A DNA stretch of 64,000 nt, taken from the IMG/VR virus record IMGVR_UViG_3300028177_000001, positions 186,001 to 250,000 of that record. One strand, 5' to 3'. Within the stretch, counting starts at the first letter, position 1. The number at the start of each line of letters is the position of its first letter. Of the stretch, positions 15,943 through 58,650 are shown piece after piece. A program made the position numbers and the translations under genes. A model generated the notes under the pieces. It was given only the letters and a program-made list of their open reading frames with translations. It was not told the origin of the DNA and searched no databases.

Positions 15943-17391
15943 TTAGGTCAGCGGGTCGCCGTCCTCAATGTTTTCCTTCAAGTCGTCCAGAAGCTCTCGT
16001 AGCGTCATGGCGACCTTGCCCCGGACGTACCCAGCCGCCACGGCCCGAATCCCTGCGACCTGAACGAACGTCATCGGGTCGAAGGTGAGCTGGGTGCGTG
16101 CATCAAGCACTGCGTCCGTTAGTGAAGCAGCTGCTCGCCCCCGGGAGAGAAACTGCAAGAGGATAGTGGGGTCGATGTACGCGCCCCGCGTAGTAGATGC
16201 GTTGTCGTGGTTGAGAGCACTCTGCGCTTCGGTGAGTGCTTGCCCGATGGTTTCCACCAGAGCCTCTACAACCCTCTCTCGCAGGGCTTCAGTCTCCTCC
16301 TGGGCGAAGCCCCGGATGCGCTCGTACAAGTCCTCCTGCCCATTCCTCAGCGCTGTGAGCACAGTGTCTGTGGCGCGGAGCTTCCGGAAGTCGGTCGGGT
16401 CGATGCCCTTGAAGTTCTTCTTGAAGTAGTTGTGGAGGTCGTTGTATGTGAACCGCTGCCCAGACGCATCGATGAGCACGTACTTGGACTGACCCTCCCG
16501 AGCCTTGTCCACGTAGTCCTGGAGGACGCGGATCAGCAGACCGTCGGACAACCCCGCCGTGTTCAAAGTCCCGGCCTTGCCGATGAACTCAAGCTGAGCG
16601 AAGTTGTCCCTCAAGAACCGAACGTGGGACGGACCCAGGGTCACTGCGCCGAAGGTCTCCACGGCGACGGACTCACCGTCAATCGTCTCTACGACCCCGT
16701 TGCCCACCCGTCCCGGACGGATGCCTGTCTCCATCATGATGGCCGTGGCCAGAGCGGCCAGGCGTACTTGTTCGTTGCTGCTCTTCAGATCCTTCTTCAC
16801 CCGGATCACGATGGCGTTGTACCGCTTCAGGATCAGCTTCATCCGTGCGATCTTCTTCTCCATAGTGAAGCGCTCGTTCACAAAGCGGTCCGTGACACGC
16901 TGGATGTTCCCGTCGACGTCCACGTCAACAACGATGTTGTCCGGAAGGAACGCCCGCAGTTCCAGAGGCAGAGCCTCCTTGAGAGGGGCCTGGGCCACCG
17001 CCATTTGCTGGGCCTGGTAGCCCTTAGTAGCGAGACGATCCAGCTTCTCCAGTCCCTCTCGTGCTGTTAGGTAGCCGAGACCGATGTCCCGAAAGAGCAG
17101 ACTGCCCGCAGCTCGCCAGTTTCGAGCCTTGACGTGCTCTGCGTCTGTTCCCAGATACTGTTCAAGAAACGCAGCTACCTTCGGGTCTGACCTCAGCACG
17201 GTGTTCAGAGCCCGCTTGCGAGCCTTCTGAACCTTGGCCCCCCTGCCTGGGTTCGCCTCCTTCGCTGCAGCTACCTCAGCGGACAGACCCTGAAGCACTC
17301 GGCGAAACGCCCGGCGAGCGTCGGCCTGGTGCTTAGCCAGATCGACGCGGTCGCGTCTGAACTGCTGCGCGGGGGTGGGGAACGAAGGCAT
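15943..17391 (-). CDS. DNA topoisomerase IB (viral/bacterial type)
   Basis: ETGIRPG (R), FIGKAG (K), DFRKLRAT (R), ALNH (H), GAYIDP (catalytic Y). Confidence 0.88.
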   Translation of the reverse strand: MPSFPTPAQQFRRDRVDLAKHQADARRAFRRVLQGLSAEVAAAKEANPGRGAKVQKARKRALNTVLRSDPKVAAFLEQYLGTDAEHVKARNWRAAGSLLFRDIGLGYLTAREGLEKLDRLATKGYQAQQMAVAQAPLKEALPLELRAFLPDNIVVDVDVDGNIQRVTDRFVNERFTMEKKIARMKLILKRYNAIVIRVKKDLKSSNEQVRLAALATAIMMETGIRPGRVGNGVVETIDGESVAVETFGAVTLGPSHVRFLRDNFAQLEFIGKAGTLNTAGLSDGLLIRVLQDYVDKAREGQSKYVLIDASGQRFTYNDLHNYFKKNFKGIDPTDFRKLRATDTVLTALRNGQEDLYERIRGFAQEETEALRERVVEALVETIGQALTEAQSALNHDNASTTRGAYIDPTILLQFLSRGRAAASLTDAVLDARTQLTFDPMTFVQVAGIRAVAAGYVRGKVAMTLRELLDDLKENIEDGDPLT

Positions 17392-17393
17392 CT

Positions 17394-18593
17394 CTACTGG
17401 CTTCTTGCCAGGCGGAGCAGTGTCCGACGCTCAGGCGACCCCTTTGGCAGCACTGATGCGAGACGTACCAGGGAGCTCTTTTTGTCGGCCTTCCCGCCCT
17501 TTGCGTACTTCTCGGCGGCGTCCTTCCCCTTGTAGGGGCCTCCGGCCTTCCCCTCTGGGTTCTTGGCGTACCACTTCCCCTTCTGTTGCCAGGTGGACCC
17601 CGCCTTGCGAGCAAGATCCAGAGGCTGGTTCTCGTCTACGATGTTGTCCTGAAGGTCGGCGCGGAACACACCGGGCAGATCAAAGGCAGCGGCCAGGGCC
17701 TCTTCGATAGGAGCCTCGATCACCTTCACCTTCATCTTGCGATGAGGGTCGGCCAGAAGCAGGCCTGCATAGCGGTGGTGGCCGTCAATGACTGTGGCCT
17801 TCCCCGTCTTCGGATCCCGGGCGACCAGAATGGGAAGGTCGGGGAGCTTGTCGAACTCACCCGTGAGGAACGCCTTGGCGATCCCGTAGCTCTTTCCCGC
17901 CTTGATTTCAGCCTGGGATGCAATCAACTTGCCGACCTCGATAGAGTCGTCAGTGATCTCTGTGCCCTCCGACTTCAGCTTGTCGAACCACTGCTCCTGC
18001 GTGGTCTTGTCGGACTTCGGGTCCGCCCCCGCCGCCACAGCGGCTTCCCCCTTCTTGACGTCCTTGGGGTCGTCAGAAGCCAGGAGGTCCTTCACGGACT
18101 TGTCCATGATCTGGGGCATGTTGTCCCGGGTGATGCCCAGGTTTCCTTCGCATGCGGGAGGCCTCAGGTTGCAGAAGTCCGTGGCCTTGTCGATACCCTT
18201 CTGGAGCTGCTCCGCGACGTGGATCGCCCGGGACAGATCCCCTCGGGAAACTTCACCGTCTTCCCCTGCAATCACGTTCAGCTTGAAGCTTCCGCCGAGC
18301 GCCTTGACCGCCGGATGATCCTGGAACTGCTTGAGGTCCCCGTCGCTCGCCTTGGTGGTGTCCGCGAACTCCTTCTCATCCCGGAGCACGCCCTTGTCCT
18401 CCTTGTCCTTCTTCCCCTCGCCCTCGTCAGTCTTCTTGACCTGGTGGTTCTTCGGATCCGCGCCTGGGTGTTCCTTCAGGTACTTCTTGAGGGCCTCTGG
18501 GGTGGCGAAGTCTTGCGCCAGACGCAGGAGGGCCCTCCGGTCCTCGGACCCCTGGGGGAGGACGGCGGCGAGCTTGATAAGGGGAAGGCGCAT
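17394..18593 (-). CDS. ParB/Srx-like domain protein bracketed by repeated peptide tags
   Basis: LIASQAEI, PILV, VIDGHHRYA; IKLAAVLPQGSEDRRALL at the N-terminus and VRLASVLPKGSPERRTLL at the C-terminus. Confidence 0.75.
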   Translation of the reverse strand: MRLPLIKLAAVLPQGSEDRRALLRLAQDFATPEALKKYLKEHPGADPKNHQVKKTDEGEGKKDKEDKGVLRDEKEFADTTKASDGDLKQFQDHPAVKALGGSFKLNVIAGEDGEVSRGDLSRAIHVAEQLQKGIDKATDFCNLRPPACEGNLGITRDNMPQIMDKSVKDLLASDDPKDVKKGEAAVAAGADPKSDKTTQEQWFDKLKSEGTEITDDSIEVGKLIASQAEIKAGKSYGIAKAFLTGEFDKLPDLPILVARDPKTGKATVIDGHHRYAGLLLADPHRKMKVKVIEAPIEEALAAAFDLPGVFRADLQDNIVDENQPLDLARKAGSTWQQKGKWYAKNPEGKAGGPYKGKDAAEKYAKGGKADKKSSLVRLASVLPKGSPERRTLLRLARSQ

Positions 18594-18658
18594 TCCGTCT
18601 CCGATAGAGCATTCGTACCCAGGCGCGGGTATAGGTTGCCTACTGAAGAGGAAAGGCC

Positions 18659-57138: not shown

Positions 57139-57242
57139 GCTTCATATTACCGGTTCGGTGCCCTCCTATTACGGGTGCATGCTTATGCAACCCAGGGTTC
57201 CCCCTGGGCGTTCTCGGCGTAATAGAGGTGCAGGAGAGCGCC

Positions 57243-57575
57243 ATGGAAGTCCGCACCGAGACCTTCAACAAGTCGAACTGGTCTGGCGAGACTACCGAGC
57301 TCAAGGTTCGGAAGTACAAGGACGGTCGGGAGACCTTCAAGCTTCACGGCTACGACTTCACCCTCACCGACCCCGCAACCACGCCGTCCGACGATGGGGA
57401 CAGCGACTGGGACTTCATGTCCCGCAGCCTGGTGGGGAGCGGCTGGAAGGATCCCCTGTTCAAGGTGTGCAAGTTCCGCAAGGACAAGTACTGGACCTGC
57501 TCCCAGTACGATGTCTCTCGGGAGGACGCCGACCCGGTCGTGGCCGCTGCCAAGCTCGTCTTCATGGTGGTGTGA
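57243..57575 (+). CDS. hypothetical protein
   Basis: Promoter motif plus AGGAGAG RBS. Confidence 0.7.
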   Translation: MEVRTETFNKSNWSGETTELKVRKYKDGRETFKLHGYDFTLTDPATTPSDDGDSDWDFMSRSLVGSGWKDPLFKVCKFRKDKYWTCSQYDVSREDADPVVAAAKLVFMVV

Positions 57576-57609
57576 ACACCCGTTAGGATGCCTATCCGAC
57601 AGAGGGTGC

Positions 57610-58650
57610 ATGCTACCTGACCCCTCTCGTGTTGTTGCAGGCTTCCTCCGCTCTGCGGGGAAGCACCCGAAGTCCTGGCGCCCCAGCTTCAATCTGGAGA
57701 GCCCCCGCATGTTCGGGCGGGACATGGAAAGCCCGGTGTCGTCTGTCTTCAAGGCGGACCACGGGAACTACATCCACGAGCCTTCAGACGGGGACGTTGT
57801 CCTGTACCAGCCCAAGGGGAAGCGGAAGTTCGTGACTCTGGGCCACGGCAACTTCAACACGGCGCGGGCCCTGGCCGTCAAGCACCACGAGGGAATCCTC
57901 AACCCGAAGACTCCTCGCGACTTGAGCAAACCCCCATGGAAGCGTGCCTCGGTGAACGTGGGAGGCAAGAGAGTCACTCGGCTGGCCACCTACGACCGCA
58001 CCAATCCTGACACCTTGAAGTGGGTCAAGGGATTCTTCTCCCGTCACTCAAAGCTCCGTCGTTTTGCATCGATCCCCGTCGTCCACGTCGAGGAGCCGAA
58101 CCGTCGTCGGCATCCTGAGGCGAGCTACACGAGCAAGGGCATCGAGCTGTACCCCAAGTTCCGTCAGCTATCGCCTGGAGTTCAGGACTTCGTGTTTGCT
58201 CACGAGATCGGACATGCGGTGCTGGAGAAGTGGGGCAACCGGGAGTTCATGTCGGCTGCCAAGGTTGCCGGTGTGGACCCGTGGGACACCCCCAACCTGC
58301 CGTTTGCTCAGCACAACTTCGATGAAGCCTTTGCGGACAGTTTCGCCAGCTACCACGTTGATGGGGATGTCCAGCGTCGGTATCCTGAATGGTCCTCCCT
58401 GGTTTCAGTTAGCCTGAGTGCTGTTCGAGGAGCGTCGATGCGAGTGGCGACTAAGACTCCGGCTGAGAAGGGGCTGGACGCTCTGGGCAAGGTGCGCAGT
58501 CCCAACACCCCGTTCTTCTCTCCGGGGATCGCCCCTCTCGACCGAGAGTGGCTTGAGAAGGCGTTCGCGAAGCAGATCGGCAAGGGCAGTGTGTTCTACA
58601 CTACCGTCTTCGGCCAGTCAACCATGTACGCAGTCTTCTCTGTAGAGTAA
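57610..58650 (+). CDS. peptide-tagged protein with HExxH zincin domain
   Basis: PDPSRVVAGFL; FAHEIGHAVL ... DEAFADSF. Confidence 0.7.
   Translation: MLPDPSRVVAGFLRSAGKHPKSWRPSFNLESPRMFGRDMESPVSSVFKADHGNYIHEPSDGDVVLYQPKGKRKFVTLGHGNFNTARALAVKHHEGILNPKTPRDLSKPPWKRASVNVGGKRVTRLATYDRTNPDTLKWVKGFFSRHSKLRRFASIPVVHVEEPNRRRHPEASYTSKGIELYPKFRQLSPGVQDFVFAHEIGHAVLEKWGNREFMSAAKVAGVDPWDTPNLPFAQHNFDEAFADSFASYHVDGDVQRRYPEWSSLVSVSLSAVRGASMRVATKTPAEKGLDALGKVRSPNTPFFSPGIAPLDREWLEKAFAKQIGKGSVFYTTVFGQSTMYAVFSVE

Follow-up and report, generated by a model that had tools for sequence, protein, structure and literature searches.

The stretch of virus DNA analysed here (the window, 64,000 nucleotides, corresponding to bases 186001-250000 of the single 288,255-base virus record IMGVR_UViG_3300028177_000001) raises the question of why proteins with unrelated domains, encoded between its positions 15943 and 58650, should share short peptides at their ends. 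An earlier note on this DNA had described three such peptides, tags A, B and C, and had suggested that they form a modular packaging and ejection signal by which enzymes are loaded into the virion. The source of the DNA is a huge marine tailed phage. The observation of shared tags has been confirmed and is larger than first noted, and a further peptide, tag D, absent from the earlier list, has been found here. That the tags are modular, interchangeable units carried by dozens of unrelated proteins is well supported by the sequence comparisons, and they behave as address or docking peptides, being short, structurally autonomous, attached through linkers, tolerant of position and exchangeable. 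As to their function, the loading of effectors into the prohead, followed by their ejection with the DNA, is put forward tentatively, the case for it being circumstantial. The gene names used below (gNNN) refer to a set of ~340 genes obtained over the whole record with our own codon-usage caller; positions outside the window are given as genome positions.

Tag A, a Widespread Helical Hairpin

Tag A, for which the pattern (L/I)xxLAxxLxxGSxxRxxLL had been proposed, is a helix-loop-helix of ~33 residues. A search of the 288-kb genome with a hidden Markov model (HMM) of the tag recovered 12 copies in 11 open reading frames, with a clean gap to noise, and in all-against-all BLAST comparisons of the proteins that carry it similarity was confined to 30-38 residues. 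The tag is not restricted to this phage. Its profile matched 1,683 clusters at E <=0.001, and 794 at the stricter threshold of E <=1e-10, among 1.84 billion representative proteins; in IMG/VR it is present on large viral contigs, and a 297-kb relative whose capsid protein is 88% identical holds 24 copies. No family or structure for tag A was obtained when it and the tagged proteins were compared with Pfam, PHROGs and the Protein Data Bank (PDB), and a protein atlas search gave only generic hairpin look-alikes. Tag A is, whether or not the capsid is its partner, a widespread unannotated domain family.

The AlphaFold2 (AF2) model of the tag, calculated from a 70-row alignment, consists of a helix at residues 7-19, a five-residue loop and a second helix at residues 25-42, with a predicted local distance difference test score (pLDDT) of ~90. 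The hairpin is amphipathic, with a hydrophobic face wider than a lone hairpin needs, and carries two invariant arginines, its net charge, as counted from the alignment, being small and positive. When the copies within the genome are compared with each other, 363 differing codons are synonymous and 461 non-synonymous, and nucleotide identity goes down to ~45-60%. Taking into account that so many codon differences are synonymous at such low nucleotide identity, it is the tag A peptide, and not a DNA or RNA element, that is under selection.

With regard to processing, the possibility that tag A contains a cleavage site of the phiKZ type, S-x-E, was discarded for lack of a conserved Glu. The element KK[AGST][ASG] directly precedes 28 of 111 non-N-terminal copies, against 3.6 expected, and may be either a protease site or simply the start of the tag itself. 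A similar sequence is seen in two very acidic scaffold-like proteins encoded beside the protease gene, g070 (genome 69295-70413) and g073 (genome 72495-73682), in each of which a run rich in Glu, with Ser-Lys-Lys-Ala at its end, is present twice.

Tags B, C and D

A blind scan of the first and last 30 residues of all proteins gave 16 pairs scoring at least 45, whereas internal controls gave 0, and it recovered tags A and B together with the previously unreported tag D. Tag B is a helix of ~12 residues, Pro/Ser-Ser-x-x-Arg-Val-Ala-x-Arg-Tyr/Phe/Trp-Leu, found at both protein ends and also between domains. Its pattern occurs 9 times in the genome against 1.1 expected, and overall the tag is counted ~17 times, where ~1 would arise by chance. 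A profile built from 16 copies of tag B has 23 matches in the genome and 24 in that of the 297-kb relative, and each of four smaller fragments has 3-8; in two relatives negative for tag A it gave 0 and 4 weak matches only.

Tag C (E-A-L-x-x-Y-L-x-E-H-P-x-A-D-P-x-x-H-x-V) occurs twice in the genome, in the genes that start and end at window positions 36567 and 17394, respectively, as had been reported, and it recurs after N-terminal tags in other phages. Thus, it directly follows the N-terminal tag in 10 of 150 tag A proteins, and in many homologues of g220, described below, it stands after the leading tag, of whatever type this may be. In several phages its place after the N-terminal tag is taken by another module, F-x-N-P-x-T-G-N-x-V-x-F-x-S-L-P-x-E-x-Q, seen in the homologues P0302, P0304, P0307 and P0021 and in g327 (genome 272847-273737).

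Tag D, Met-Lys-Asn-Leu-Lys/Arg-x-Ile-Leu-Ala-Glu-Glu-Gly-Leu, is present in 12 copies, 10 of them N-terminal. Seven of the 12 lie in a single cluster of small genes outside the window, g316-g326 (genome 263906-271100), the other genes carrying it being g025, g039, g046, g088 and g304, and it recurs in some relatives.

Exchange of Tags Between Cargo Proteins

The same cargo can be found with different tags. The cargo of g046, which has tag D, is 69% identical to that of P0135, which has tag A; g322 (tag D) matches P0118 (tag A); and the cargo of g062, with a C-terminal tag B, corresponds to the C-terminal domain of P0051, which holds two copies of tag A. In addition, g241 corresponds to the end of P0007 but has no tag, and g041, g040 and g038, separate genes here, are fused with tag A in P0017. 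The widest range is seen in the ParB-like family of g220, in which tag A at both ends, a variant of it (A') at both ends, tag B at both ends, mixed pairs, tag C alone and no tag at all have been found. The A' type reads Leu-Arg-x-x-Leu-Ile-Arg-Leu-Ala-His-x-Asn-Pro-Glu-Leu-Arg. The modular character that had been claimed for the tags is therefore borne out, since they sit on unrelated cargo, are swapped between homologous cargo and are conserved at the protein level.

Another gene of this kind, g002 (genome 311-1180), encodes a second ParB-like protein, with the motif DGHHRW, which has a divergent tag A variant at its N-terminus and a degenerate one at its C-terminus, while homologues elsewhere have canonical tag A.

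Tagged Genes in the Window

The arrangement of modules is best seen in g220 (17394..18593, minus strand), which encodes 399 residues in the order tag A, tag C, a disordered linker, a ParB/sulfiredoxin-fold domain with the motif DGHHR, a small module made up of three strands and one helix, and tag A again. The presence of tag A at both ends, stated in the earlier note, is supported by the translation and by the HMM: the N-terminal copy (18501..18593, minus strand; domain E 1.9e-9) has AF2 helices at residues 2-11 and 17-27, and the C-terminal copy (17400..17501, minus strand; domain E 3.8e-12) at residues 371-380 and 387-398. Tag C (18438..18515, minus strand) is ordered in the model, with a pLDDT of ~86, the mean for the whole protein being 86.9. 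The cargo matches a ParB-like PHROG family (E 2.6e-5), Foldseek searches with the model returned sulfiredoxin, Noc and ParB at a probability of ~1.0 (E 6e-3), and DGHHR is invariant across 32 homologues; on these grounds the cargo is assigned to the ParB/sulfiredoxin superfamily.

The small three-strand-plus-helix module (G-K-W/Y-x-A-K-N-P-x-G...), at residues 334-364 of g220 (window 17500-17600), precedes the C-terminal tag; the same module is found at the C-terminus of g074, a large protein described below, and in homologues, and it is reminiscent of AP2-type DNA-binding domains.

The gene adjoining g220 is g219 (15943..17391, minus strand; 482 residues), a type IB topoisomerase (Pfam Topoisom_I, E 7.7e-8). 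A weak tag B had been suspected near its C-terminus (IRAVAAGYV); the tag B profile finds no match in g219, and this copy has been dropped for that reason.

Tag A was also correctly placed at the N-terminus of g244 (31936..32322, minus strand; 128 residues), where the translation and the HMM agree (32212-32322, E 4.4e-12); the cargo of this protein has no match in Pfam or PHROGs. A promoter-like motif, GGTAG-N6-CTATCC (32358..32373, minus strand), lies 36 nt upstream of its start codon.

Tag B has been found, in translations and profile matches, at the N-termini of the three proteins to which it had been assigned. The first of them, g254 (36567..37826, plus strand; 419 residues), has tag B at 36567-36620, tag C at 36615-36695, a possible GNAT-like domain, a second tag B at 37623-37676 and, last, a charged tail. 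Its two tag B copies, of which the second, near the C-terminus, had been noticed as an internal one, have profile E-values of 4e-7 and 1.2e-5, and the motif GGTAG-N8-TATCT (36539..36556, plus strand) lies 10 nt upstream of its start codon. In g260 (40264..40584, minus strand; 106 residues) the tag occupies 40531-40584 (E 9.6e-5). In g288 (57610..58650, plus strand; 346 residues) it occupies 57610-57663 (E 2.1e-5), and GTTAG-N6-TATCC (57582..57597, plus strand) is found 12 nt upstream of the start codon.

The cargo labels given to these genes fared unequally. The ParB-like domain and the type IB topoisomerase hold, whereas the GNAT label of g254 and the zincin label of g288 have behind them only Pfam matches below threshold (E 0.22 for the former; E 0.016, to Peptidase_M78, for the latter) and motifs, HExxH in the case of g288, which may thus be a zincin. 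PDB sequence searches gave no match for either of the two labels.

Regulation and Charge

The promoter-like motif mentioned above (GGTAG, 5-9 bases, TATCC) is found 10-36 nt upstream of 13 of the 340 genes, and 10 of these 13 are tagged (Fisher p 2e-8). The association also holds for genes with tags B and D, which played no part in deriving the motif: it precedes 4 of 26 of them, against 3 of 302 others (p 9e-4). Motif, 5' leader and tag go together in g052, g094, g129, g244 and g308, and there are clusters of small genes with a common leader, such as g316-g326.

A 19-nt unit (CACGGTAGAGCTACTATCY), in 1-4 tandem copies, is also found at genome positions 51744-51812, 102322-102353 and 144338-144349. 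It lies in front of three genes with tag A, g052, g094 and g129, at a distance of 21-22 nt from their start codons. It contains the inverted repeat CGGTAG-NN-CTACCG and looks like an operator or a 5' hairpin, superimposed on the promoter-like motif.

The tagged proteins are basic, with a median isoelectric point (pI) of 9.26 against 5.54 for the rest (p 4e-8); when the tags are cut off, the median pI of the cargo is still 8.68 (p 0.011). The tags therefore mark a co-regulated set of basic proteins. In addition, the structural block, comprising 44 of the 340 genes, holds 7 of the 14 genes with tag B (p 6.6e-4).

Cargo Repertoire and the Polyvalent Protein g074

Of 90 tagged proteins in other phages, the majority match no Pfam family, and the few that do have ADP-ribosyltransferase, pentapeptide repeats, DUF2958 or mycobacteriophage L5 gp82. 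A tagged protein of the head gene block, g074 (genome 73840-80202, minus strand), has 2,120 residues and is encoded between the protease g071 and the portal g081. Pfam identifies in it a topoisomerase IB core (residues 621-823) and an InPase domain (1290-1414); GNAT-like and DGHHR ParB-type motifs were read by eye from its sequence, and it has a long acidic helical tail. Copies of tag B lie between these parts, at about residues 389, 857, 1425 and 1516. The tag-B-like motif at residue 857 was also considered as the catalytic tyrosine of the topoisomerase, and this was rejected, the tyrosine motif being upstream, at about residues 820-829.

Iyer and colleagues (PMC5512222) list InPase, DdrB-type ParB, GNAT, MPTase and 2H among the phage-type domains of polyvalent proteins, which are predicted there to be packaged in the capsid and injected. 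A polyvalent protein has two to 15 effector domains of this repertoire in one polypeptide; g074 is a genuine example, the only one here, and the tags occur inside it, beside the head genes. The tagged genes of the window encode single-domain proteins which are not themselves polyvalent and, in the case of g220, g254, g260 and g288, are not located beside the portal, terminase and head genes; as their cargo repertoire matches, they look like dissociated modules of the polyvalent tool kit.

Within the same head gene block, g075 (genome 80229-82931; 900 residues) is built like a 'Swiss army knife' for RNA repair, with a CCA-adding/poly(A) polymerase head, a HAD domain, a 2H phosphoesterase and an internal tag B.

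Proposed Loading into the Prohead

It is proposed that tags A/A', B and D, with the follower tag C, would form a set of interchangeable docking peptides, joined through flexible charged linkers to the ends of accessory proteins, for the most part small and basic ones, or lying between domains. Each tag would most likely bind a repeated site inside the assembling prohead, either on the scaffold or on the capsid interior, and the tagged effectors would then be taken in, stay with the DNA and be brought into the next host. Copies at both ends of a protein, or at several places in it, would raise its avidity for the repeated lattice, and the tagged stand-alone proteins would be the dissociated counterpart of the giant polyvalent protein g074. 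The binding partner, encapsidation, any cleavage and ejection are steps that we infer. Five observations favour this reading, namely a cargo repertoire of polyvalent type, tag B copies within the head module and near it, the basic character of the proteins, a gene for a prohead protease, and the apparent fit of tag D to the capsid-targeting sequence (CTS) of phage T4.

The comparison with the T4 CTS deserves attention. The internal proteins of T-even phages are highly diverse defence proteins which share only the conserved targeting sequence (PMC3012670), and those of T4 are highly basic (PMC8442874). Like the CTS of IPI-III and Alt, the tags are short peptides common to unrelated, fast-evolving, basic accessory or anti-defence proteins; the shared stretch is confined to the tag, and a prohead protease gene is also present in this phage. 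Tag D, unlike tags A and B, appears to resemble the T4 sequence itself (MKTYQEFIAE) in the succession M-K-x-hydrophobic-x-x-hydrophobic-hydrophobic-A-E. When a pattern was derived from the T4 CTS alone, its strict form found g326 (1 against 0.013 expected), and its loose form g316, g318 and g326 (3 against 0.10 expected).

Several observations weigh against such a reading. The T4 CTS has ~10 residues, is strictly N-terminal and single-copy, and is cleaved off, whereas here there are at least four modules, of which A and B are also C-terminal, interdomain and multi-copy, tag A being in addition a folded hairpin of ~33 residues; in the best 150 matches to tag A, 243 copies were counted, with 132 N-terminal, 33 C-terminal and 78 internal. 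This argues against a simple T4-like signal, and because A and B fail to be N-terminal and single-copy, the tags do not belong to the T4 CTS family as defined. Besides, no conserved cleavage motif follows the tags, neither the scaffold-like proteins g070 and g073, in which the HMM finds no tag A, nor the major capsid protein bears a tag, and the promoter-like motif is not seen before head genes, except upstream of g075. The comparison of the tagged proteins by tblastn with 50,697 deposited phage records gave no match, and no cultured phage among these records matches a tag A protein. Finally, basic charge and DNA-related cargo fit the tethering of proteins to DNA equally well.

Three other systems can be compared with the tags. 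As in the polyvalent proteins described by Iyer, Burroughs, Anand, de Souza and Aravind in 2017, the effectors are InPase, ParB-like, GNAT, zincin/MPTase, 2H and ART domains, and g074 is encoded beside protease and portal; unlike in them, most tagged proteins here are single-domain. Term searches of PMC5512222 did not bring up shared short tags between or around domains, and 'linker' was found 0 times in the text so searched.

A second likeness is to the coat-binding helix-turn-helix of scaffold proteins (P22 gp8, Pa193), as tag A is a helix-loop-helix in the size range of 30-40 residues and contains basic residues. In structural comparisons with its model, the scaffold hairpin of phage Pa193 in its capsid-bound state ranked first (PDB 9b40 chain G; Z 4.5, rmsd 2.5 A, 41/41 residues). 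This match is not significant and is a lead only, because the ties within Z 1 include many unrelated hairpins; furthermore, there is no sequence similarity, and the scaffold-like proteins of the phage itself have no tag A. According to PMC9962691, engineered P22 is loaded with foreign cargo through the scaffold hairpin.

The third comparison is with systems that are not viral. The cargo-loading peptides of encapsulins and the encapsulation peptides of microcompartments are short and amphipathic, are placed at either terminus behind flexible linkers, and bring unrelated enzymes into a protein shell; encapsulin shells, moreover, have the HK97 fold, which we take the capsid protein of this phage to share. 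In contrast, there is no sequence relation between those peptides and the tags, and the former direct metabolic enzymes to compartments of the cell, whereas the tags would place effectors in a virion filled with DNA. By analogy, the tag system would work most like the T4 CTS and these loading peptides.

In its most developed form, prohead loading would involve a combinatorial address code of at least four modules (A/A', B, D and the follower C), often acting as bivalent anchors, by which dozens of effectors that evolve fast are put into a capsid of HK97 fold and injected together. This is possible, but we consider it rather doubtful.

Alternative Functions

The alternative that survives best, which we nevertheless hold to be unlikely, is that the tags dock onto a common hub outside the virion (a complex of phage or host proteins, a factory for replication or takeover, or a condensate) or onto each other, multi-tag proteins cross-linking the effectors and gathering them in the infected cell. 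It would account for the abundance of proteins with several tags (80 of the best 150 tag A proteins have two or three copies, typically separated by linkers rich in Lys, Glu and Asp) and for the existence of some that are little more than tags (P0013, of 87 residues, and P0065, of 48). The wide hydrophobic face of the amphipathic hairpin and the shared promoter motif, which would define a dedicated regulon separate from the head operon, point in the same direction, and the two ends of one protein usually carry the same type of tag, although mixed types on one protein do occur (P0287 and P0308). However, no hub candidate has been identified, and a hub leaves unexplained the over-representation of tag B genes in the structural block, the polyvalent repertoire and the apparent likeness of tag D to the T4 CTS.

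It is still less probable that the tags bind nucleic acids as minimal modules of a SAP-like or helix-extension-helix-like kind and so tether enzymes to phage or host DNA. The cargo is DNA-related (the ParB/Srx nuclease-like domain, topoisomerase IB nearby, a weak WGR match and pentapeptide DNA mimics), the tagged proteins are basic, tag A displays its two invariant arginines on a helix-loop-helix and, in our own reading, which is a lead only, tag D is similar to SAP/Rho-N motifs in their first helix and turn. Nevertheless, profile searches of Pfam with the tagged proteins gave no match to SAP, Rho_N, helix-extension-helix or HTH families, either at E 0.01 or at E up to 5, and no relative was found in the PDB by sequence. 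The net positive charge of tag A is small, tag B has only ~12 residues, and the fold matches are to generic helical hairpins with Z <=4.5.

That the shared termini are mainly a cassette, whether evolutionary or for expression, in which promoter, leader and first codons are propagated through recombination and capture new genes, with a peptide of generic function such as stability, a degron or chaperone binding, seems very improbable, because, although motif, leader and tag travel together in the five genes named above and small-gene clusters have a common leader, this explanation is weakened the most of all by the codon analysis, in which it is the peptide that is conserved and not the DNA, and by the C-terminal and internal copies, which cannot be leaders, tag A being conserved, besides, across at least 1,683 clusters.

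The Phage and Its Relatives

The record has a GC content of ~62% and an estimated completeness of 79% according to CheckV. Near-identical DNA was found in marine and seawater metagenomes from 15 studies, and among the datasets thus matched there was no RNA run holding the region. The major head protein is g068 (phrog_2522, E 4e-52); the portal g081, the large terminase g083 and the head maturation (prohead) protease g071 have also been identified, and tail-like proteins are encoded in the record. The sequence of the protease has no match in the PDB.

More than 2,000 proteins are related to the capsid protein, and the contigs that encode them reach 372 kb. By terminase, the nearest GenBank record is LR745208.1, from an uncultured phage of 485 kb (54% identity), followed by Tunturiibacter phage Tunturi_5 (28% identity); both of these closest GenBank relatives are devoid of tag A. 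The tag-positive relatives are close, with capsid proteins 88-91% identical, and those used for comparison are fragments. When prokaryote genomes were scanned with g129, no match was obtained.

Other features of the window are four tRNA genes, all on the minus strand, at 28412-28487, 32674-32746, 58815-58890 and 59930-60011, with the identities Arg-CCT, Arg-TCT, Met-CAT and Glu-CTC, and a gene at 54711-56663 (minus strand) for a protein of 650 residues with a von Willebrand factor A domain (VWA_2, E 1.4e-6).

Concluding Remarks

As far as we know, how jumbo phages choose the proteins that they enclose and inject is largely unknown outside T4, and no description of tags A-D was found in the literature searched. 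If the tags do load proteins into the prohead, they would constitute a natural means, general in kind, of loading cargo into phage heads, similar to the loading peptides of encapsulins and recognisable from the sequence by itself, and would serve as handles for the loading of foreign proteins into phage capsids. Moreover, with the tags as the signal, the genomes of uncultured marine phages would directly reveal which takeover and anti-defence proteins are injected. Even if their partner is not the capsid, tag A defines a co-regulated, modular set of effectors.

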